Source: Epithemia pelagica | Lineage: Eukaryota > Protista > Bacillariophyta | Reading direction: 5' to 3' | Assembly: GCA_946965045.2 (NCBI GenBank) | Contig: OX337234.1 | Span: 1,302,001-1,366,000 of the forward strand | DNA length: 64,000 bases | In this document: positions 2,000 through 39,637 of the stretch, in pieces | How the letters are laid out: the number at the start of each line of letters is the position of its first letter | Numbering within the stretch: position 1 is the stretch's first letter | Notes under the pieces: generated by a model | Database searches by the model: none | Told to the model about the DNA's origin: nothing | Seen by the model: only the letters and a program-made list of their open reading frames with translations | Program-made: the position numbers and the translations under genes

Positions 2000-4900
2000 T
2001 TACGGGAAATGGTGTGCAGAACGGAGGATAACTGGGCGCCACGTATTGAGCCAGTTCCTCAATTGAATAGAAGTGGTGGCATAGGTGAAATGAACTTGGG
2101 GTGAATCGTAAAACAAAACAGAGTCGGCAGATTGGACCTGTGACCGAAGAGAATATACTTCGAGAACTTCTCGTTGCGCTTGAGAATAAGCAGAAGCTTC
2201 GATTGATTGTGGAGTATCACCATGAATATCGTTGTTACGTTGCAACCATAAACGATGCACATGGTGCCAGATAATAGTAATGGTAGAAGAAATGAGGCGA
2301 GAGCCGGAGAAAAGTGGAGAGGAAATATCCTGGGAAATAAGGAACTGGTCTTGAAGACGAGACCAATGTAAAGAGAAGCGGCCCATGAACACTTGTTCGA
2401 GGCCGATAGTAAGTTGGGAGGCAACTGCGCGTTGGTAAGGGAGCGGAACTGTAGGAAAGGAAGGAGGAACATCATGCAACCACGAGCGGAGACATTCGGT
2501 AAGGAGCATGGCTAGATGTGGATCGGCATTCAGAGAAGACCATTGTTTTTCAAGATCTGCAAGGAGCGCGGGAAACCATAAACGGTGAGGACATCGAAGA
2601 AAGTGAGTCAAGGTCTCGAGAGTCGAAGGACACAAGGGGCAGAAATCTTGGTAATAGGTAGCGTATCTTGATCGTAGATGCCCCAAAGGTAACCAATCAT
2701 GTATCAACTTAATGATAAAGTGGCGTTTGGGAAAATTTGCATTAATGGCTCTGCTATGTGACTGCCAGTCGATGCTGTCGAAGGTAGAAAGAGACCAATC
2801 AAACTTCGTGCACAAATAATGAGTCGATCGTTCACGAGTAGCGAGCCTGCGGAGAATGGAACGATAGTTGGAAGCTATGGTGCCTGATAAACCATGAAGG
2901 ACTGCCTGACTGCCAGAGATTAATGGAGCAATCGTGGATGAAACGTGGTCCGGGTAGGTGTAAGAGGAAGCAAGACCATCTGCGTCGACGTTCAATTGAG
3001 AGGGAAGCGGCAAAGTCGAATATACTTGCGCGTCGTCCTGATGACCCTTGACATGTTGAACGACCGGCAGTTCCGAAAACTGACGGAGAGAATAAGTAAT
3101 CGCTTGTTGTAAGTCCCAATCAGCGGTCATGGTGGAATACGGAAATTCCACCATCCATTCTAACCGTTTGTGGATTGTTTTAACCAGGCTTTCAGAATCG
3201 GTGTACAAGCGGAGCGATCCCGGTAGAGGAATATCACTGAAAGAGCAAAACTGTATGATGAAGCGAAGAAAAGCTAAGAATCCGTAGCTCTCCGCTCGGA
3301 AGGAAGACGTACGGTAGCCTGGAGCAGGACCATGTACCATAAAAAGACGAGTACCACCTTCAGTGGCGCAAGTACAACCGAAAGTACCAACAAACGACGC
3401 AGCAGAACCGTCGCTGCATAGTAACAGAGGGGCAGATTGAAGAAAGTGCGTGACCAATTCATGTTCCTCGCATACCAGTGTGCTCTCTGACATAAGTTGT
3501 CGTTCCCAAGAAGAAAGTTGACTAACATAAGAGTCGAAGCTTGAAGGAGAAGGAGAAGGTTGTGTAATAAGAACAGGGCATGACGGGAGAACCAGACGTG
3601 TAGACCCAGTATTGGCAGTAGCCACAGGACACGAAGAAGACGGAACAGTGGACCGAATCACTGGAGTTGATACAAAAACGGGCCCCATAGCTCGGAATTC
3701 TTGCCATTGTTGATGTGAAACGTAAACGTATAACTTGGATCGAGCTGAGTCCAGATACGAGAACCATTGGCGTGCTGTGTCATTACCGCCTACAAGCCAC
3801 CTGCATAAAGGAGATGCGAGGCGACGTGCGGACATAGGAGCAAGAAAAGATCCGAGAAACTTTCTCCATTTTCCCCAAGCGCGAGAACCAGGCCTTGTTT
3901 GGTATGGAGTTAGCAATTCGCAAGAAGATTTATTGTCTCGTCGTCCATCCAGTGAGGCAAGAGTAAAAGTGCAACCGTCGGGGGTAACGATATCGCTGAG
4001 CATTGTCACTTGAAGATACAACCGGCACGCGTTGATTAATTTGAGATCTGTTGCAGACGACGTAAAGGCTAGAGCTGAATCCATCAGAAAGACATCGTTT
4101 TCCCTTTGTAAGCGAGGTACAAAGTCTTCTTCTAGTTCGACACGACAATCCACCGAGGAAAGAAACTGACGGAGCTGTGGTACCCATTGCATTGGAGTCA
4201 AATGGGGGAGAGGGGTATGAACATCTTCGAGGATAGGAACACCAGTGCCAGCAAGAAACTGACCCCAGGACATCATGATGGAAGCTAACTTGTGGGGTAC
4301 ACCGTCTGAACGGATACAAGCCAGAAACAAATACAACTGTGCGATTCCGCGTTCAACTGAGAGAGTCCGCAAACCAATTCCGCCGTACTCTGAGGAGCCA
4401 TACACAACAGCATTCGGCATGTTGCGGTTGAAGCCGTACTTTGGTAAAAAGGCTTGTTTGAATTGTCGTTGTAAGGCAGTACAGTGTGAATTGGATAGTG
4501 TTGATGACGGTAGGGGGTAGCAAATACTCGGAAGGTATATAGCATGGTAGTAGGACCACGCATCTGTTCTTGAAAATGGACTCCTTGCCATAACTCTGGT
4601 ATGTTCCTGATTTCGTTTCAACAGTGCCAGAAATAACCCTTTGTCAGTGGCGTGGGGGGATTTTTGTACCCCTAAGGTCTTGTGACTTTTGAAAGCCGAT
4701 AGGTGCTTCAATGGTACGGACGGACGGCCGTCAGTAAAGGAAATAGTGATTGTAGGTCCGAAGCTTCCATCTCTCAAAAGAGGTAGGCCATCGATGGAGA
4801 AGCGGTAGTACATAAAATGATAAGAGCACTTCAACGGATTGAGGGCTCCTCCAGACAAACCAAGAAGATCATTCCATCTCTGAGCGTCTTCCTGCGCTTT

Positions 4901-7838
4901 GGACAAGTAATATTCAGGTGGTGCTGGATCGGTACGACAAAAATCGTTTACGCTGCCGCTAGTATCGTCGACAAACCCGATCATGTTGATTGTTGTGCGA
5001 ATTTTGCCGTCAGGAGAGACAAACGTAGCTCCGTGGGACTTCTCTTCATAGGTGTCAAAAAGAACGCTCGAGATCACACACCATATCGCAGGGGAATTAC
5101 CGGCTCCCTGTCCTGAACCATAAATCGGGTAGATCGTACAATGCTTGTAAGAACTCTCAGAAACCCCCAATTGTGTTTTAAGATAATACTTTGCTTCAGC
5201 CAATGTCTTGGCGTTGATAAAGACAATCGACCGGTTCTGGCCGAAACTCCGCGAGACCAGACTGCCAACCGATAATACAATCCGATCATAGCAAGCCGTG
5301 GCATCATAGTCGAGATGTACCAGAGGGCGTTTGCTTGCACGTGATATTTCATATTGAAATTCTTCACAAAGCGTTGGAATCACTGCATCCCGTCCCGGAA
5401 CGCCGCCAAATTGCGTAGGATGAATCACCTGTTGATTGGTGGAAAGCTGAATCATTTGTCGCCATTTGATTGCAAGAACAAGGTTGTAGTCTTGTTCGTA
5501 AAGGTGGATGACACGCAAACGATGGATGCGCAAATCGTTTGGTTCCTTCAAGATCATGACGTTTACTATATGTTTCCATCGGGAAAACGAATATTTGTTC
5601 TCGAGACCACAGTTCAAAATGCCAACTTGCCAATCAATCAGATCTTCCCTCTTGCGTTCCAGAGCTTGACCCTCCTCCGACGACGGATCCAAATCATGCG
5701 GTGCAATAAGTACCTTGCTATGTCCCAAATGAAAGCCTGATGGTGACGTTGTAGTAGACTCCGGCCACGATCGAATCTTACCAATCCAGTCCTCTTTGCT
5801 AATTGCGCATGGAATCGCATCTATAGCGACTCGCAACTTCATGTGATCCAATAAACTTTGTTGCATTTCGTCTAACTCATCTGATTGCAATTCTCCTTCT
5901 AAGATCAATTCCGCTGTGTGCGTGGAAGCACCCCAATCGCACCATTCCGAGAACGGAGCTTTCGTGGGAAAAGTCCCGTTCGCTTGGCCAAAGTGGCGTC
6001 TGTTTCGTTGAAGTAAACGTTCTTCGATCTCTGCTGGCGTATCTATCGTTATCCAGCTTGAGCAGTTGTTGTAGTCTGTTGTCGTAGTATCTGCTGGAAC
6101 GTCTAGGCGCGTGATTCCCGACTTCTGACTACCCCGATATTGCCGAAGTCGAGAGTACATTGCTTTCGTTCTTTCAGCTGCTATCCGAAACTTCAAAGCT
6201 TTTGATTGTTGTTTGTCTCCGCGATCCAAAGCTTCTTGGAGCGCTAGCTTCAATTCATTTTGGCGTTTAAAGACTGCTTGTTTTGTAAGAGTCTTGATTT
6301 TCTGTTGTACCACTCGAAGTTCAGAGCGACATTCGGAAATTGTAGAAGGGAAACCGCCCGTATAACCACGTTCTGTAATATGGGCAATGCCCGAATCGAA
6401 AGATCTCTTCAGCCGTGTCGCCGAAATGAGACGTTGAAGCAAGTTCTTTCGTTGTCGGAGCTCAGCAATCTCAGTAACATAGGGAACGCCACGCGGTTTC
6501 TTAGCGCACTGTTTGGCAGCATGCTCACCCGCACGTTGGAAATTTTGATCTAACCGTTCGGCTAATTCAGGATCCCATTCTTGTTGTAAAGCGGCAAGTC
6601 GTTCCGCAAATCTGTGTTCCTGGCAATACTGATGCTTGGCCTCAATATAAACTCGATTCGAGGACTTATCTTTGCTGGTGAAGTCTCGACAGGAGATTGG
6701 TCCAAGTTGTTGTGTTTTGTTTCCGAATAGTTTTTCTGCGTCAAAATCGATAAGTATATTACGATGGTCCCCGCGAGAGCGTTGACCAAACGGTTCGTAG
6801 CAGCCATCGACAACAGCCTCGGCAACCCAATCGGACGCTAACACGTAATCTATCCTGTCTTTTCCGCGAACGTGAGTACCAAATTCAGTAGTTCCAAGTA
6901 TCTGACTCATTACGTCGCATAAATCAGCTCTGAGCAAAGTTTCGACATGCCTTGATTCGAATCGTTGAGAGGTTCGTTGAAATCGCCAAGAAGAATAATA
7001 CCCGAGTTTGCCGATTGCCTATCCCGTATGAAATCAGTCAGGTCCTGGATAAACGCTTCCCGTGGGGTGCAATACCGATTGTTCTGTCGGAGCATAGAAA
7101 CTTGCTGAGACGAGGCTGTGTATGAACGAATTTGCCCAGTGGAATCGTCAACGATCTTCTGCTTGCAAACTTGATACGCCGTATGATCGTGAGAGATCTA
7201 TGTCCGCGGCATGAGAAGACTTGATACGTCCATCGTCCAAGATTGTCTCGACCTTGAGCGGTGACTCTACCTGTTGTCTTTTCTTGAGTAACTTGAAGGA
7301 CACCTCCTGGTTAGTATTGTTTGCATCTTGGAGACGGAATGTTGCTGCTTGTGACAATCAACCTTGAATGCTCAGTGTGTCGTCGAAGTGTTGTTTCCAG
7401 TCGATTCCGAACTGAATGTTGCGTACTATCCAAATTTATTTCGTACAGTCCCCATGTATCCACCATAAGATTGGTCATCTCTAAACATAATTCCGCGAAT
7501 TCCCCACCGTCATGACCGATCTTGAGCCCATTCGGATTGCAACCGAACAAACGGAAAATGCCATCCTCTTTCCTGGGGTTCCTTGGTTGGCCGATAAAGC
7601 CGTTATTTGCGTAGTTCAGCTGTCCCGTCAGTGTCATTTCTTCTGGTTCTTGGTAATAAAAGTTCTCCTCGACTGCATCTTGATGTTGGTCTTGGATGTA
7701 ATCGTTGTGCGTGTTATTTGTGCTTGTGTTTGTGTCGTAGTCGGAGTGCATTGCATTTGTAATGTGATGAAATTCTTGATTTGGTTGTTCTTGGTTGTCT
7801 ACATTATAGGTTACCGTGCTATTACAATCTTGACTCAT
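2000..7838 (-). pseudogene. LINE ORF2: AP endonuclease + reverse transcriptase + RNase H + C-terminal zinc knuckle
   Basis: APE motifs: NPNG, EIN, Y*PGG, GRW, AYQVC, ILLGDFNE, IDYVL. RT motifs: QFGGVPGR, DYDATACYD, GSGQGAG, GFVDD. RNase H motifs: CSDGS, RAESYG, YTDSES, HVKGHQD, NVDAD. CPLC..ETLTHFLRC lies near the C-terminus. Lesions: TAA at 7311-7313 and single-base frameshifts near 7181 and 6923. ATG 7838 overlaps the ORF1 stop. Confidence 0.9.
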
Positions 7839-31724: not shown

Positions 31725-32302
31725 GAGATGTATTGGTTACCCACTATTATCCGACTCTATTGTATTTGTTTGCCGCGTCGTCTCATGGTGGTGATTGCGG
31801 GGGTCACCGGATGGGTCAGGGGGCGTGTTATTATGGTATCATGTTTTTGGGGGGCAGGTCGCTCTTGGGTCGGAAGTTGGGGAAATCGGCCCTACTATGC
31901 ACAATCAGGGTTTAATGGCAAAAACTAGGTAGGTCTCTAGGGTATATTGTACTCCTAAGGAACTTTTTCCAAGTTTCCAAGGGGGGATGCACGAGGATGC
32001 GACCACTAACGGAATGGACATCACACACTACCTAATTATTGGATGATAGACTTGATTCATGTTATCTCTTAAATCTCTAGAGATCCAGAGCTGCCATATC
32101 TCTCTGGTCAATGCTTTCAAGAAACCTGGTGCCTTTTGGATATCGGAGACAAATTGTGGGCGACGATGTTGGTACGAATTGTGCGTCTGTCAATGTCACA
32201 TATGGGGCATATAAAAATTTAAACGCGAGCCCGCTCATATCGCGATGGCCCGCTCGATTCGGGTTGGCCTGCTCGATTCTTCTCATATCGGGCTGGAATG
32301 CA

Positions 32303-32468
32303 CATATCGGGCTAGCCCGATCATATCGGGCTAGCCCGATCATATCGGGCAAACACCGTGTAAAATCACATAATAAAATGCACAGATCGGGCTGGCCCGA
32401 TCATATCGGGCTAGCCCGATCATATCGGGCTGGCCCGATCATATCGGGCTAGCCCGATCATATCAGGC
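32303..32468. repeat. Tandem array of 19-bp units built on the palindrome ATCGGGCTAGCCCGAT
   Basis: Two blocks (2 units and 4 units, plus half units) of ATCGGGCTRGCCCGATCAT separated by a ~35-bp AT-rich spacer. Degenerate copies occur upstream from ~32230. Confidence 0.92.
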
Positions 32469-32799
32469 AATTAACTACAATAGCCCTGTAAATAGCCCCT
32501 CTCAGAAATAAGAACACAATACACATATTATATCGTATTGATGCTGGATATACCATATTGCAAAGTCCAACATATGGAAAAACGGCAAAGAGTGTCATAT
32601 TCATATTAAAAAAGTGCAGCTATTGTCATATCGGCACTCAAATATGACAAACGACTGCGGTGGAATGTTGAAAGATATGGATGTTGTTTGGATTTTGTAT
32701 TGGGGATGCCGTTTGGTTTTTGAGTGAAACTGACCAACGACCACAACCCTCAATCAACCTCAACCCTGTCCTAGTGGAACCAGGGTATTGAAGTTATGA

Positions 32800-33220
32800 A
32801 ATCCAGTTGTGACTTTGACTTCTAACTTTAAGTCAGATTTTTTTTTCATACGAACTTAACTTCCATTCCAAAGTCATCATAACAGTACCCTTGATTTCAA
32901 TGTCTAACTAATAATCATACAAATCATAACCCCAGCTTAACTTCTGACTTTAAGCCATTGATAATTTCACAACGACTTAACTTTGACTTTTCTTGTCACG
33001 CGCGCCCCACTCATGACTTAACTTCATCTGACTTAGTCATACATTCTCATCTCATGACTTGACTATTCAACAAAAGTCAAGTCAAGCACCTCATTGACTT
33101 GACTTCGTCCACGATGCAAAGTCAAGGTACCCCCATGACTTAACTTTTCTCCTGACTTTTTCTACCTTCGTTTGACTTAAGTCAAGCCAAAAGTCAGACT
33201 TTTTGTATGACTTAAGTTAT
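32800..33220. repeat. Left subterminal repeats of the hAT (GACTTAAC/GACTTTGAC/AAGTCA)
   Basis: Many short GACTT and AAGTC motifs in both orientations; mirrored at ~39100-39450. Confidence 0.85.
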
Positions 33221-33428
33221 GACTTTGTCTACATGATACATGATACATACCGCAGAAGTTGGCAGTATCACCGTCATGCACGTCATACTCGAGTAGTACT
33301 TGCCACGAATCCCGCCATGTTAGTCGCGAGTCATAGGTCACCCCCACCTCCACGTTGGACAACGTGCCTGCACCAGTTCTACATCCTAGAACATCACACC
33401 AAGGAAATGGCAATCAAACAGATGCACA

Positions 33429-34977
33429 ATGAACAACTCTCTTCAACGAACAAAAAGAAATCCATTGATTCCCTATGGCCCTCACCCTCTTTTTACTTTG
33501 GGTGAAGGGAACTACTTTGATACATGTCCAAGTCATGAATCGGCGAAGAAGAAGAAGCAACGAAAAATGAAAAAAGCAATTTTTGAATGGATGGAATCAC
33601 TTACTGTTCCAAGTCATATAGAAAGATATCCACGAAGCAGAAATGCAGATGGACAGGCAACCAAGATCACGCCGTTTGTTGAAGATGTTTGCGACATCCA
33701 AGTGAAATATCTCTGTTACAGAGTACGACGCGACGATGTATGGGGGCAGCTGAACAGCAGGGGTTTTGCATATATGCAGCATGCCCTCGACCACCAAATT
33801 CAAGACACACTCTACTACGATGCCATGCACTGCGCGGAAGGCAGGCATTGGAATCGATTTGCCCACACCAAGGGAGCACAGTTCGTCGTGCTCCCCTTGT
33901 GCCCCGTCTCTGAACTCGGAGCAGCCTGCGACTCTCAACTGGAATGGATTTCACTGATTATTGGGAAGTGGATTGAGAAATCATTTCCCCATCACAAGTG
34001 GGCCTCGCCATACCTATTCAGCTGTAAGCAGATTGATACTCTCATTATCATGTCCTTATTCCATTGGCTGCTGTCGTTGTCTCTCACCTTTTTTGTTCTT
34101 GGGCTCACGTTTTGTCCCCACTTTTCTTGCTTTTTATTTCGTGCAATGTGTCCCCACTTATCTTGCTGTTCTCTGCTTCATACACTCGGCTCACGTTTTG
34201 TCCCCACTTTTCTTGCTTTTTATTTCGTGCGATGTGTCCCCACTTATCTTGCTGTTCTCTGCTTCATACACTCGGCTCACGTTTTGTCCCCACTTTTCTT
34301 GCTTTTTATTTCGTGCAATGTGTACCCACTTATCTTGCTGTTCTCTGCTTCATACACTCGGCTCACGTTTTGTCCCCACTTTTCTTGCTTTTTATTTCGT
34401 GCAATGTGTCCCCACTTATCTTGCTGTTCTCTGCTTCATACACTCGGCTCACGTTTTGTCCCCACTTTTCTTGCTTTTTACTTCATGCAATGTGTCCCCA
34501 CTTTTCTTGCTGCTTCCTTCTTCACAATTCACACACTTGACTCACATGTTGTCCCTACTTTTCTTGCTATCCTCTCATGCACTTCGTCCCCAATAAACGT
34601 TCTCTTTTTGTCATTCAGGGCATTCAGATCCTCCCAAAGACAGGGAAGCTGGATACCACCTTGACCTGCCTCATGAAGGAGACGTTGAAGATGCATTAGA
34701 ACTGGCAGGCAACAAATCATTTCCTTCCTACCTCTACCCGATCATCATCCAATTTGGTCTATGCAAAGACTCTGGTGGTGGTGGAATGGAGTTTAGCAGC
34801 CGCCACCGGGGTAACGGAAAGGTCAAGCGTCGTGCAACTTTTTGTTCACTGGACTACGGCAACATTATCATCTTCAGAGCGGACGTTTATCACAAGTCCG
34901 TTTATCCCACGACATGGAACTCTGTTCTACGTATGAGCATTGGCATCAGGTATACACGACAACAAGCATACTGCTAA
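33429..34977 (+). CDS. hAT cargo gene: 2OG-Fe(II) dioxygenase, AlkB-like; exons 33429-34023 and 34619-34977 (317 aa if ATG 33429 is the start)
   Basis: Splicing GTAAGC (34024) to TTCAG (34618) joins PYLFS|WHSDPPKDREAGYHLDLPH...GGGGMEF...SLDYGNIIIFRADVYHKS...LRMSIGIRY in frame with no stops. This gives HxD (34657-34665), a distal H (34891) and RxxxxxR. The splice is predicted only. Confidence 0.7.
34103..34560. repeat. 86-bp tandem repeat (about 5 copies) inside the predicted cargo intron
   Basis: Units start at 34103, 34189, 34275, 34361 and 34447. Each unit holds two TGTCCCCACTTWTCTTGCT sub-repeats. The period is not a multiple of 3. Confidence 0.95.
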
Positions 34978-35226
34978 CCACAAACCATCTCTCACAATAA
35001 CTAAACATTTACCTAAAATCCAAGAATATCGTCTCCTTCTTCGTTGTTTGCACCATCCATATTGTCTACAGCTTGATCGATCTCCTCTTCATCTTCGCTA
35101 CTGGTACCAAAACCCAAGCCAAGTGCCAACTGCTCTCTTTTGCCTTTTCTAAAGAGAAATATCCGGCTTTCCCTGGCCAAAAAATCCCAGCTTCTTTTAG
35201 AACGCTCATCTGCAAAGGCAATTGCT

Positions 35227-38200
35227 CTATTTGGCCGTGTTGGTTATATTGTCCGTAGATGATTTCTGTGTTTTGTTGGAAGTCGAAGATTGGTCAGACG
35301 CCATGGGAGGGTCCTTCCTTTTCCTTTTGCTGGATAAACTGGTGTTCGTAGTCGCACCCACTTCATTCACAGGTGCACTCCCTTCATTCACAGAAGCCTG
35401 TCCAGGGAAAGGAAGAGTCGTTAGAGGGGGCATGCTGTCTGAAAGATCATCCGCCAAATCCACTACAACAGATCCCGATTCTTTTTGCTTGTTCTTCAAC
35501 AGTGCTACCAGTAAGTTATCATCGTCGACTGTTTCTTCAATCATCGAGGCACTTGACTCAGGACCACGTAAATCCACAAATTCAACAGTGTCTGCATACA
35601 CAACATCGTCCTTCTCGGCCTTGTCCTTGTTGTCACAATTGGAATCCAAGTAACCAAACTTGAATATATCCTCCGCTTCTTTTTCTTTTAGATACTTGTT
35701 CAATTGTTCAATGCCCTCAAGCATCACGTCCACTCGGACTCCATCTCCTGTGGTCATGGTATTAGAACTTGCACATGTCGCACTGTTCACCGAGACCACA
35801 CCCACACCCACACCCACACCAACATTTCCATTGGTGTCTGGTACATTCACTGCTGTGGTTGAACTGCGGGAAGTGGGACCGGATATACTGCTGGTGGTAC
35901 TGGTTGTGGCAGCGGTGGCAGCGGTACGAGAACTGGGACGACTTGTATCGTTTGTGGCAGCGGTGCGAGAACTGGGACGACTTGTATCAGAGATACTAGT
36001 GCTTGAGGTAACATTGGTTCCCGTTCCTTGGGTAGATTTCTTCTTCAATCTATCTGCTTGAAGGGCTTTCACTTTCATGGACACCTCTGTCGGTGGTAGT
36101 TTAGCCAGTTCTGTTTCAGCAAGAATGATGCTTTTACGGACTGGCCTCGAAACACATGTCAATGATCGCATCTGAAAGTTATGGGGAGACTCTTTTCGCA
36201 TAAGGCGATTGGAGTCCAACCATGATGAACAGGAAAAAACTCTTTCCTGAAATGCATTGGTCGCTGGTTTTGCCAGCCAAACCAGTGCTGTCGGAAAAAG
36301 ATGAGGGTATGTGGATTTATGGGCGTCCCACCATTTCATGACATGGAAGTATTTCCCAACTGACATGAAATCGTGCTTCTTGCAGCGAAAAGCAAACCAC
36401 TTCTTTTTTGGATCGTCCCATGTAATGAGCTCCTCTAGGTATTGAGGAGTGGGGTACTCATTGATCAAATCTTTCCAGTTATACAACCCTTTCTTTTCAC
36501 AATAGCGCTTGTATTCGGAGAACTCTTCCAGGATGGTTTTCTCCAACTTTCTTGCACGTTCAGTAACAGGATCGTTGCCATTATTGGCAGCAGTGCCACT
36601 CTGTTCCACATCGTCATCATCAGCAGCTAAATCCAGGTCGTCAAAAATATCAAATATGGAGGAAGACGGGTTGTCATCATCAGCATCGTCAATGGCTGGC
36701 ACATTTTCCTCTTGATTGGTGCCTTCATTGTCATTGTCTTCGTCCGTTGGTACAACCACTTCTGAGCAATTAAATTTCTCGAACGCATCGTCTTTGAAGT
36801 TTTTCTCGATTTGGAACAAGTCTGTGTTGTCATATACTTTGATTTTCTTGAAGAGGCGTGGACAAGAAGCGCAAAGTAACGGGTTGCCAATCATGGCTTT
36901 CTCTGCGTCGATGTCACGAGATTCCAGCATGTAGCGCTTGTACTCCCGAATAATGCGTGTGATTAACTCTTTAGTGGGGGGCAGTAGGAGGGCATGTTCT
37001 CGGTTGACTCTCTTGGATTCTAATTTTTTCATTGTAAGGGAAGGATCCCAGCTAGATGTCTCAACGTTGAGTACTTGAACTCCATTGTCCACCATTTTTT
37101 CAATGAAGTGTTTCGACATAAAAATCTCCATAAGAGAAGCGGAGGCTGATGAGACATCATCAGTTTGAAGTGTCATGGAACAACCTTGCAGAGGCTGGAG
37201 TACGGCCTCGTATTCTGCGAGTTGTTTCCATTCTTCTGGTGATGGGTATTTGCTTTTGAATTCAGCATCTTGCACAAGGGCTGATCTCGCGTAGTCATCC
37301 ATCACAAACTTGTTCCTAAAGAGACTATGGAACATGATGAGACAACCTCCGACGCGGGTGCCATTGGGTAGTTGGAGTTCGATTACAATCATCCCATTCT
37401 TTGCGGCAAATTCCTTGAGTTTCTCGAACCGGCTTCGTGCTTTTTTGCTCATCAACCACGAGGCAAAAGTGTGAAACTTCTTGTAGATTTTAATGAAGGC
37501 TGGGTTCTCGTCAACCACCGTTCTGCCTCTGCGACGAACAGCCTGCCCTGTGGCATGCTTCATGATCAATTCTGCGCGATGCATGTTGCATTTTCCGCCC
37601 ACTGCCATGCCAGTAATATACTTACCAGCAAGTACGGCAGAGTTGGTGTTGTCGTTAATGGAGGCGGCGAGATCAAGCTGTGTAAACCCGACTTGATTCA
37701 ATATATTCTCGGTGTGATTGGCAATCTGACGGGCGGAGTGCCCTTTTGTTTCCATAAGACCGACAGGAACTTTGAAGACATTGCAATTTCGTGGGTCAAC
37801 CAACATTAGAGTGATGCCAAGGATGTCTTTCTTGCATCCTTGCCAAACATCATGGGCAATACTGGCAAATCGGATTCGTTGTCCACACAATACTTCAAAT
37901 GTGGTGCGAATGTTATTGCCGAGATCGTTTACAACTCGCAGGTAATCATTGTATGAGTCGATCCTCATGGATGTCATGGCTCTGTTGCTGATGGAACAGT
38001 CTGACATCTTCAATAGGTTTGCATTGTTAAGTATGTACTCCAATAGAGATCGAAATGCCGGCTTCTCTACTGTGCGAGTGGGGAAACCCATGTCGTTGAC
38101 GAATTGGAATATTTTGTGATGGAACTCGCTACGCACTTCTTTTCGTGAAATAGTGATTGGAATATAAGAAGACATCTTCTTCTGTCCAGCTTTTTCCATA

Positions 38201-38931
38201 ATGCTTTCTTCAGGGGTTTTCTTTGCCTGTTCTTCTTGGTGGACTCGGTCTCTGTGTTGCTTTATGTTCGAAGATGAACCATGTTGGCCACATCCAATCG
38301 CACATTGCACAAGTGGAATATTGGGGTTCTTGAAGCATAAATGGCATACTGCTAGTCTTTTGGCAAGCTTCAAAAAGTTCTTGTCACTCGCATGTGAAGG
38401 CTGGTCAGACTCGGCCAACACTTTCAAACATTTGCGAAGTCCAGGATAGTTAGATGTGTCCAGGGGACTGTTTTCATCCCGGTATTTCTTTAGCTTCGCC
38501 CAATCAATGTGGTCCATGAGACCCCAAAATGATCCTTTGAGGTTCTTGAAAATGGATTTTGGTGGAGCACGGAAACTCAGGAGTTGTTTTTCTTCTTTGT
38601 ATCGATCCAGAGTCTCTTGGGATAGCGGTCCTTCTTCATTGCTTGCATTGTTGTTTGCAGCATTTTGGTTGGTGGTGGATGAGGACTCTTCAGCTCCTTC
38701 ATTTGTACGGGCTCTAGCTGGGTTGTCGTTCGAAGGAGCAATGGGTTGTTCTTGATTCATCGGAGCAGCGGTGTCTTGGTTTGGATTAGTGGTGGATGGA
38801 TTGTTGTTGTTGGTGTTTGTCATACATTCACCATCATTGCTGGTACGGCCATTGGTTGTTTCAGACATGGGAGAGAGTGATGATATGCTGGCTATCGTCG
38901 ATCTGGGTTGAGTGATCTCACCAGGAATCAT
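35227..38931 (-). CDS. hAT transposase, 1234 aa
   Basis: BED-like finger CHLC..SSNIKQHRDRVH; catalytic IAHDVW and NDNTNS; CNMH (CxxH); hATC dimerisation region KWWDAHKSTYPHL..AKPATNAFQERVFS. Confidence 0.93.
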   Translation of the reverse strand: MIPGEITQPRSTIASISSLSPMSETTNGRTSNDGECMTNTNNNNPSTTNPNQDTAAPMNQEQPIAPSNDNPARARTNEGAEESSSTTNQNAANNNASNEEGPLSQETLDRYKEEKQLLSFRAPPKSIFKNLKGSFWGLMDHIDWAKLKKYRDENSPLDTSNYPGLRKCLKVLAESDQPSHASDKNFLKLAKRLAVCHLCFKNPNIPLVQCAIGCGQHGSSSNIKQHRDRVHQEEQAKKTPEESIMEKAGQKKMSSYIPITISRKEVRSEFHHKIFQFVNDMGFPTRTVEKPAFRSLLEYILNNANLLKMSDCSISNRAMTSMRIDSYNDYLRVVNDLGNNIRTTFEVLCGQRIRFASIAHDVWQGCKKDILGITLMLVDPRNCNVFKVPVGLMETKGHSARQIANHTENILNQVGFTQLDLAASINDNTNSAVLAGKYITGMAVGGKCNMHRAELIMKHATGQAVRRRGRTVVDENPAFIKIYKKFHTFASWLMSKKARSRFEKLKEFAAKNGMIVIELQLPNGTRVGGCLIMFHSLFRNKFVMDDYARSALVQDAEFKSKYPSPEEWKQLAEYEAVLQPLQGCSMTLQTDDVSSASASLMEIFMSKHFIEKMVDNGVQVLNVETSSWDPSLTMKKLESKRVNREHALLLPPTKELITRIIREYKRYMLESRDIDAEKAMIGNPLLCASCPRLFKKIKVYDNTDLFQIEKNFKDDAFEKFNCSEVVVPTDEDNDNEGTNQEENVPAIDDADDDNPSSSIFDIFDDLDLAADDDDVEQSGTAANNGNDPVTERARKLEKTILEEFSEYKRYCEKKGLYNWKDLINEYPTPQYLEELITWDDPKKKWFAFRCKKHDFMSVGKYFHVMKWWDAHKSTYPHLFPTALVWLAKPATNAFQERVFSCSSWLDSNRLMRKESPHNFQMRSLTCVSRPVRKSIILAETELAKLPPTEVSMKVKALQADRLKKKSTQGTGTNVTSSTSISDTSRPSSRTAATNDTSRPSSRTAATAATTSTTSSISGPTSRSSTTAVNVPDTNGNVGVGVGVGVVSVNSATCASSNTMTTGDGVRVDVMLEGIEQLNKYLKEKEAEDIFKFGYLDSNCDNKDKAEKDDVVYADTVEFVDLRGPESSASMIEETVDDDNLLVALLKNKQKESGSVVVDLADDLSDSMPPLTTLPFPGQASVNEGSAPVNEVGATTNTSLSSKRKRKDPPMASDQSSTSNKTQKSSTDNITNTAK

Positions 38932-39637
38932 ACTCTGGTCTCAATGCTTGAGATGAATGAGCAACAAGAGACTGGCCAGAAAAGATGTGCCGCTGCAATT
39001 TGCTGTGCAATAAAGATGCCAGGGAAACTACCTATTCGTCGATTTCTAGTTTCTAGTCGTAGGGAAGGGCAGTATAGGGAAAGTTAGTACTGATATTGCG
39101 TGGACTGACTTAAAGTCAGTGGGGAAAGACGCCCGTGACTTGACTTCTCTGTAAAGAAGTCAGTAAATGAGGCACGGTGACTTGACAAGTCATTCAAAAA
39201 ATGTCGTGACTTTGGATTTGATTTTGAGCGAGAAAACCCCCCAAAAGTCAATGATTTTGGTATGAAAAAAGTTCGTTCCTAGATAGAGTGACTTGGATTT
39301 GACTTTGACTTCAGAGAAAAAATCGTACAAAATATAGGTTGATTTAAATTCGTTCAGAAAAGTCGTACCAAAGGGACGTGACTTTGACTTGATTTTGTAA
39401 AAAAAGTCAAAAGTTATGACTTAAAGTCATGAAGTCAAAAGTCAACCGGTATGACTTCAATACCCTGAGTGGAACACAACATTATCACGGCATCCCCGTT
39501 GTCGCTAGTTAGACCCTATTCTATGCATACTTCGGGTGGGCGGGCTGATTTCCCCAACTTCCGTCCTGTAACAATACTTTTGCGGCAAAACCGCAACAAC
39601 AGATTGTGCGAGGATTGAAACAATCGTAGAAATCATC

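Follow-up and report, generated by a model that had tools for sequence, protein, structure and literature searches.

A hAT transposon of the diatom Epithemia pelagica with an old, spliced cargo gene whose product most likely is a PhyH-like Fe(II)/2-oxoglutarate oxygenase

This article describes a DNA transposon of the hAT superfamily and the second gene that it carries in the diatom Epithemia pelagica. The analysis is based on a stretch of 64,000 nucleotides (contig OX337234.1 of assembly GCA_946965045.2, positions 1,302,001 to 1,366,000 of the forward strand), hereafter called the window, and all positions given below are counted from its first letter. The transposon occupies positions 32781-39467 (6,687 bp) and is a complete element with two convergent genes, the stop codons of which are 249 bp apart (Table 1). 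One of these genes encodes a hAT transposase. The other, hereafter called the cargo gene, is split into two exons and encodes a protein of 317 amino acids (aa), and its structure, age, and putative relationship to the Fe(II)- and 2-oxoglutarate (2OG)-dependent oxygenases are the main subject of this analysis. An earlier interpretation made from the letters of the window and a list of its open reading frames (ORFs), hereafter called the sequence-only reading, had placed the cargo gene within transposon ends and convergent with an intact transposase, and this arrangement was confirmed by the terminal inverted repeats (TIRs), the 8-bp target-site duplication (TSD), and the uninterrupted ORF of 1,234 aa described in the following.

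The TSDs on the two flanks of the element, AGTGGAAC, are identical at 8 of 8 bp and thus have the length that is characteristic of the hAT superfamily. The TIRs are 17 nt long and start with CAGGG, in agreement with the short TIRs of this superfamily, and their outermost 14 nt, CAGGGTATTGAAGT, are exact and present within the window at the two element ends only. Towards each end lies a cluster of the short repeat TGACTT/AAGTCA, of which there are only 2 copies in the 5.6-kb interior of the element and no further clusters in the window. Subterminal clusters of short repeats are the usual arrangement of hAT transposase binding sites, and the two clusters are therefore probable candidates for such sites. 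Residues 857-902 of the transposase matched the Pfam model Dimer_Tnp_hAT (PF05699) at 1.3e-6 and 28.5 bits, as compared to a cut-off of 21.4 bits, and residues 848-904 were similar to the C-terminus of the Hermes transposase in the PDB (E-value 8e-4). The matches of the transposase in the Pfam and PDB libraries were limited to this C-terminal domain, which is the dimerization domain of hAT transposases.

In contigs from two DNA-like sequencing runs of the same organism position 33285 is joined to position 38907 or 38926, by which approximately 5.6 kb, reaching from the left subterminal region to where the transposase ORF starts, are skipped. These junctions are consistent with internally deleted, non-autonomous copies of about 1 kb elsewhere in the genome, similar to Ds elements or miniature inverted-repeat transposable elements (MITEs), and the existence of such Ds-like copies implies that the element family has been mobile. 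The element in the window is a young, recently inserted, and structurally complete hAT transposon that apparently is autonomous. It shares with Ac, Hermes, and Tol2 the 8-bp TSD, the short TIRs starting with CAG, the subterminal repeats, the C-terminal dimerization domain, and the internally deleted derivatives, but these elements encode a transposase only, whereas the lineage represented in the window keeps a second conserved gene and has an unusually long transposase.

Table 1. Positions of the hAT element features and of the cargo gene within the window.
Feature	Position	Strand	Description and evidence
Left TSD	32773-32780		AGTGGAAC, identical to 39468-39475
Left TIR	32781-32797	+	CAGGGTATTGAAGTTAT; 16/17 complementary to right end
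Left subterminal TGACTT/AAGTCA cluster	32810-33225		21 copies
Cargo gene, exon 1	33429-34023	+	aa 1-198 and first base of Trp199; translation; homologous blocks upstream of exon-2 homologs in L001-L005
Cargo gene, intron	34024-34618	+	Phase 1, 595 nt, GTAAGC...TTCAG; sequence; same position and phase in L003, L004, and L005
86-bp tandem repeat in cargo intron	34102-34524		4.9 copies; Tandem Repeats Finder, 97% matches
Cargo gene, exon 2	34619-34977	+	aa 199-317 and stop; translation; family alignments; PhyH-type profile similarity
hAT transposase ORF	35227-38931	-	1,234 aa, no internal stop; ORF list, Pfam, PDB
Right subterminal TGACTT/AAGTCA cluster	39106-39457		20 copies
Right TIR	39451-39467	-	Pairs with left TIR, 16/17
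Right TSD	39468-39475		AGTGGAAC

The two exons of the cargo gene add up to 954 nt with 317 codons and zero internal stops, and they are joined within the codon of Trp199 (T|GG) after removal of an intron that begins with a GTAAGC donor at position 34024 and ends with a pyrimidine-rich TTCAG acceptor at position 34618. Exon 1 encodes a G-F-A-Y motif and a basic stretch, KKKKQRKMKK (aa 40-49), which resembles a nuclear localization signal (NLS). The motifs that the sequence-only reading had listed for exon 2 were all found: GYHLD with H212 and D214, GGGGMEF (aa 251-257, with a G-x-x-E motif in GGMEF), DYGNIIIFRADVYH with H290, which is part of H290-K-S292, and RMSIGIR (R303-R309), which starts with R303-M-S305.

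The intron is unusually long due to the 86-bp tandem repeat, which makes up 423 of its 595 nt. Since this repeat stays open in the frame of exon 1, the ORF list contains a spurious ORF of 411 aa into which exon 1 runs, and the ORF track hides the cargo gene, as the sequence-only reading had stated. In the DNA-like runs the summed contig depth of the intron repeat is approximately 20- to 400-fold above that of its flanks, and it has the appearance of a genome-wide minisatellite or satellite sequence expanded within the cargo intron. One marine metatranscriptome contig is identical to the intron repeat at positions 34360-34475. A word-indexed protein search using exon 1 as query returned zero matches, the query itself included, and the cargo gene is thus apparently unannotated. 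This is a warning for genome annotation, given that the gene is absent from the protein collections searched and is hidden in the ORF track by its repeat-filled intron. Separately, in one contig of run X4 position 34542 is joined to position 35079, by which 536 bp between the end of the intron repeat and a point past the cargo stop codon are skipped, the shorter arm of the junction being just 29 nt long; some copy of the element may hence be devoid of exon 2.

Relatives of the cargo protein were searched among 1.8 billion representative sequences using phmmer with exon 2 as query (exhaustive search), followed by a profile search. The phmmer search yielded eleven matches and the profile search eight more, giving a total of about 20 relatives, those considered genuine being fragmentary short ORFs on contigs of eukaryote-like character. 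The loci examined came from three sources, namely the ENA long-read assembly ERZ25042306 (L001, L002, L003, and L005), a metagenome contig of the Joint Genome Institute (L004), and a Logan contig of SRR20217197 (P0017). At every locus with DNA (L001-L005) a homolog of exon 1 is located directly upstream of the exon-2 homolog. A phase-1 GT-AG intron interrupts one and the same Trp codon in the window gene and in the loci L003, L004, and L005, its donor reading T|GT[AG]AG and its acceptor YAG|GG, and according to the family alignments the position of the stop codon is common to the window gene and its relatives. The introns of these three loci have a length of 84-95 nt as compared to 595 nt in the window. 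Because the coding blocks and the intron position are conserved and the sequence and length of the intron are not, the splice model receives strong comparative support, and with it the junction at 34023/34619 and the stop-free product of 317 aa postulated by the sequence-only reading.

The cargo gene lies beside a convergent hAT transposase in all three outside sources. Downstream of the cargo gene in L003 there is a convergent transposase remnant that is 28% identical to residues 769-935 of the window transposase (E-value 2e-15), and L004 has a weak convergent hAT transposase match at the contig edge (E-value 0.04). In the P0017 contig two convergent ORFs of 332 aa and 649 aa follow immediately downstream, the former with a faint match to Dimer_Tnp_hAT. 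A co-occurrence of the cargo with hAT transposases, as the sequence-only reading had proposed to look for, was thereby observed, and the cargo gene is not a one-off host fragment. The cargo proteins of the outside sources are merely 35-45% identical to the window protein, from which it follows that the pairing of hAT element and cargo is old. No free-standing full-length homolog was found among the 1.8 billion representatives. Searches for TIR and TSD ends around the ERZ25042306 copies yielded no more than chance-level pairs, these copies being too decayed. When a metagenome locus scan was run with the family alignment, 0 of 25 pattern matches were confirmed, and no plasmid sequence was matched by exon 2 in tblastn at an E-value of 10. 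When other copies or strains of the window organism were compared, the ratio of synonymous to non-synonymous changes was 3:1 in the cargo gene and 4:10 in the transposase; these small counts tend towards constraint acting on the cargo gene. Judged from these sequence comparisons, the cargo gene is a real gene that has long been co-inherited within this hAT lineage, rather than a recent capture. As a further observation, two separate contigs of ERZ25042306 contain near-identical segments of 20 kb, L001 and L002, in which decayed cargo copies are located (locus 4403-7472) among ORFs of the copia type (RVT_2) and the piggyBac type (DDE_Tnp_1_7).

The putative function of the cargo protein was assessed from conserved residues, profile comparisons, and library searches. 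At an overall identity of 35-45% the family has conserved the motifs YHLDLP, G-x-x-E, FGNIxIFxxDxFH[KR]SV, and LR[VLM]SI, and its best-conserved residues are found in YH212-L-D214-LP, H290-[KR]-S, and L-R303-x-S305. YHLDLP is kept in every covering relative except P0012 (YHLDLQ) and the decayed L003, which has an in-frame stop at the Tyr. H290 is present in 15 of the 15 covering rows of a 16-row alignment, and the HxD...H pattern of the iron-binding facial triad is thus conserved in the family. R303 follows 13 residues after H290, within the distance of 10-15 residues past the distal His at which the basic residue binding the C5-carboxylate of 2OG is located, and this Arg is kept in all relatives reaching it; S305 is replaced in P0013 (FRVLI).

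For profile comparisons with the PhyH family, six phytanoyl-CoA dioxygenase proteins from plasmids and an alignment of 126 PhyH sequences were used as references. Comparison of the exon-2 family with the six plasmid proteins using hhalign gave a score of 26.4 (P = 0.0025), as compared to a mean of 12.1 (standard deviation 2.3, maximum 19.7) for 200 column shuffles, and comparison with the 126-sequence alignment gave a score of 30.2 (P = 6e-4, probability 29%). The exon-1 family alone scored 19.7 against the N-terminal G-Y motif of PhyH, which is above 100 of 100 shuffles. When the family was split into five segments, aa 100-140 aligned to PhyH columns 22-38, aa 236-265 to columns 149-160, and aa 266-317 to columns 191-229, i.e., in collinear order, and the first and the last of these three segments beat all shuffles.

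The library searches gave sub-threshold matches. The sole PDB match of a profile built from 8 family sequences was PtlH, a PhyH-type Fe/2OG hydroxylase, on GDILLFHAHMCHKS..RMS (E-value 1.2), a match that we regard as fragile. The sole NCBIfam match of the window exon 2 was TIGR04324, a 2OG-Fe(II) oxygenase, at an E-value of 0.089. Three family members matched phrog_274, the best at an E-value of 0.009. A genuine PhyH protein from a Rhizobium plasmid likewise had phrog_274 as its best PHROG (E-value 1.3e-4, profile positions 33-178 of 192), and the label of this PHROG, 'DNA endonuclease V', is probably misleading. A language-model atlas placed the window exon 2 among the 2OG oxygenases (2OG oxygenase clan), but its placements disagree between family members and are given little weight.

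Compared with PhyH proteins (PF05721; e.g., PtlH, 1-deoxypentalenic acid 11-beta-hydroxylase, PDB 2rdn) the cargo protein has an apparently collinear order of motifs, consisting of an N-terminal G-[FY]-x-[YV], HxD, G-x-[LI]-x-[VF], and G-[DN]-h-h-h-F...H-x-S...R. Among the 14 residues that are invariant in the six PhyH seeds the cargo family matches Gly, His, Asp, Gly, Phe, His, and Ser in an alignment read by eye. Unlike PhyH, the cargo protein has HxD and the G-x-x-E strand separated by about 14 additional residues, has not kept the G-S-H and N-x-S of PhyH, and stays below the curated thresholds. The PhyH enzymes described so far function in the metabolism of their hosts and are not known as transposon genes.

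Several observations weigh against the interpretation of the cargo as an expressed PhyH-like enzyme. In the five-segment comparison the segment containing HxD and the segment before it had no PhyH signal on their own, the HxD of the family was aligned to that of PhyH in only one of two runs, and the hhalign probabilities against PhyH were just 12-29%. A richer profile of 16 sequences had no match in the PDB, the PtlH match being lost. In Pfam, neither exon and none of 8 family members had a match, including at an E-value of 10, and no curated family model was significantly matched. AlphaFold2 gave no fold for exon 2 alone, with a predicted local distance difference test (pLDDT) score of 50 using the 8-sequence alignment and 45 using the 16-sequence alignment. 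The language-model atlas assigned the relative P0017 to the beta-barrel porins, with a score equal to that of the window exon 2, and placed the exon-1 part nowhere (score 0.6). The known substrates of PhyH-type enzymes are small molecules and lipids, and such chemistry would offer a transposon no obvious benefit. In ERZ25042306 the majority of the cargo copies have decayed through stops and frameshifts, which is to be expected of old transposon copies. Finally, no spliced RNA was seen: the runs of the organism, which contain about 80% of the words of the region, are DNA-like and unspliced through both splice sites. A marine metatranscriptome contig of 167 nt corresponds to positions 33419-33585 at the start of exon 1 with one synonymous difference, and neither this contig nor the one matching the intron repeat crosses the splice junction.

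Weighing these points against the conserved residues and the profile similarities, we consider it probable that the cargo protein belongs to the Fe(II)/2OG oxygenase superfamily, and its narrower affiliation with PhyH-like enzymes is given a modest preference on the same grounds. For the locus as a whole we favor, with some reserve, a young hAT element that combines its transposase with an old co-inherited cargo gene, the product of which most likely is a PhyH-like Fe(II)/2OG oxygenase and not an AlkB protein.

The alternative that survives best regards the cargo as an accessory protein that is conserved in this hAT lineage but has another fold or no enzymatic activity, e.g., a transposition cofactor, and the HxD/H/R residues and the weak similarity to PhyH as coincidental. 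It would be in line with the silence of the curated models, the AlphaFold2 result, the discordant atlas placements, and the hhalign probabilities below 30%, but we regard it as unlikely given that three segments are collinear on PhyH with two of them beating every shuffle, that PDB, NCBIfam, and PHROGs each returned a PhyH-like or 2OG oxygenase as top or sole weak match on the same C-terminal motif, and that the invariant residues are exactly the candidate ligands of the metal and of 2OG.

Somewhat less probable is that the cargo is a nucleic-acid dioxygenase, either AlkB-like or a very divergent relative of TET/JBP, that demethylates the DNA or RNA of the element and thereby counteracts silencing. 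The HxD...H...R pattern is common to the PhyH, AlkB, and TET/JBP families, the basic NLS-like stretch would fit such an enzyme, and TET/JBP cargo is on record for DNA transposons of fungi, hAT7 among them (PMC12730594). Every weak library match obtained here points to PhyH-type enzymes instead. With regard to AlkB, the label given to the cargo by the sequence-only reading had relied on RxxxxxR as a family signature, and it was rejected on two grounds. First, the second Arg of this motif (R303...R309) is specific to the window and is replaced by Gly (IGY) in all relatives; even within the same species, a contig of another copy or strain has an A>G exchange at position 34948 that results in R309G. 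Second, the hhalign score of the family against an equivalently built AlkB profile was 13.3 (P = 0.29-0.5) and thus at background level (shuffle mean of 12), while in a control comparison the AlkB and PhyH profiles detected each other with a score of 35.4. Additionally, the Pfam model 2OG-FeII_Oxy_2, used as a test for AlkB, had no match in 8 family members. What the cargo shares with the AlkB family, as represented by E. coli AlkB, is limited to the generic HxD...H...R.

With regard to TET/JBP, the Pfam model Tet_JBP had no match in 8 family members at an E-value of 10, and no TET chain was among the PDB matches of the 8- and 16-sequence profiles; this is a weak test, as it was made without TET/JBP reference sequences and divergent TET/JBP proteins can need structure comparison. 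Some TET/JBP cargo proteins of fungal DNA transposons were recognizable by structure only (PMC12730594). The claim of a 2OG-Fe(II) dioxygenase is thus plausible in its general part, with HxD, the distal His, and Arg-x-Ser conserved and a profile similarity of the PhyH type, and fails with respect to the AlkB type; the proposed DNA/RNA demethylase acting against silencing was not supported and is purely conjectural.

DNA transposons do capture fragments of host genes, and many of the ERZ25042306 copies are decayed, but a passively captured, decaying host-gene fragment (transduplication) without a role for the element is highly improbable, since a complete two-exon gene with start region, intron, and stop recurs beside hAT transposases at 35-45% cargo identity, the window copy is intact, the cargo variants between copies are mostly synonymous, and a free-standing host homolog was not among the representatives searched.

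Under the preferred interpretation of a PhyH-like oxygenase, the cargo protein would adopt a double-stranded beta-helix core, in which H212, D214, and H290 would coordinate the iron and R303, together with S305, would hold 2OG. Considering the NLS-like stretch, the enzyme made by the element would work in the nucleus. Its substrate would be one whose modification favors the element, the candidates being a mark on chromatin or DNA, a factor of the host, or the element's own transposase. We know of no PhyH-type enzyme that acts on nucleic acids, and for this reason a role in anti-silencing is considered doubtful. It is nevertheless the obvious hypothesis by analogy with the TET/JBP cargo of fungal transposons (PMC12730594). 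More speculative, and in our view rather unlikely, is the broader proposal of an ancient hAT lineage, distributed among diatoms and related marine protists, in which a hitherto unclassified, distantly PhyH-like oxygenase active in the nucleus is an obligatory gene product, as part of an undescribed wider habit of diatom DNA transposons to carry base or chromatin modifiers; such an oxygenase would be separate from both TET/JBP and AlkB and might, to the advantage of the element, remove a silencing mark or act on a factor of the host or of transposition.

The sequence-only reading was not aware of a pairing of hAT elements with dioxygenases, yet such a pairing is on record: hAT7 transposons of rust fungi (Puccinia) encode TET/JBP dioxygenases (Kojima, 2025; PMC12730594). 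Like the element in the window, the TET-positive hAT7 transposons are hAT elements with a second gene for a dioxygenase of the 2OG/Fe(II) type inside the TIRs, and in both cases a benefit of the enzyme for the element is proposed. They differ in having a 7-bp TSD, in their occurrence in Puccinia, and in encoding a recognizable TET/JBP protein (PMC12730594), whereas the window element has an 8-bp TSD, resides in a diatom, and carries a cargo that resembles PhyH and has no TET/JBP signal. A literature search retrieved no publication in which dioxygenases were connected with diatom DNA transposons or transposons with PhyH-type enzymes. What the present analysis adds is that the intron is conserved, that the gene is linked to hAT in three outside sources, that AlkB is rejected, and that the cargo has a putative PhyH-type affiliation; the combination of a hAT element and a 2OG dioxygenase as such had already been published (PMC12730594). 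Few transposon enzymes or proteins directed against host silencing are known, i.e., VANC of plant VANDAL elements, SET genes of oomycete elements, and TET/JBP of fungal elements (PMC12730594). If the interpretation favored here is true, a non-fungal hAT lineage has kept a different oxygenase over deep divergence, and the strategy would not be tied to TET/JBP or to fungi. Diatom biology would gain a defined candidate gene for the interaction of a mobile element with a DNA or chromatin mark.

Three further features were observed within and around the element. Between the two stop codons, at positions 35000-35200, the depth is 4- to 7-fold above that of the neighboring genes and several contigs diverge at 34999 and 35107; this piece seems to be common to other repeats or to variants of the element. 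About 300 bp upstream of the left end, positions 32306-32468 consist of palindromic short repeats (unit ATCGGGCTAGCCCGATCAT) with many overlapping inverted pairs. Lastly, an inverted repeat of 25 nt with 92% complementarity (31868-31892 and 39542-39566) flanks the hAT element on both sides, and since its arms would be about 1 kb apart once the hAT element is removed, the transposon may have been inserted into an older MITE-like element.

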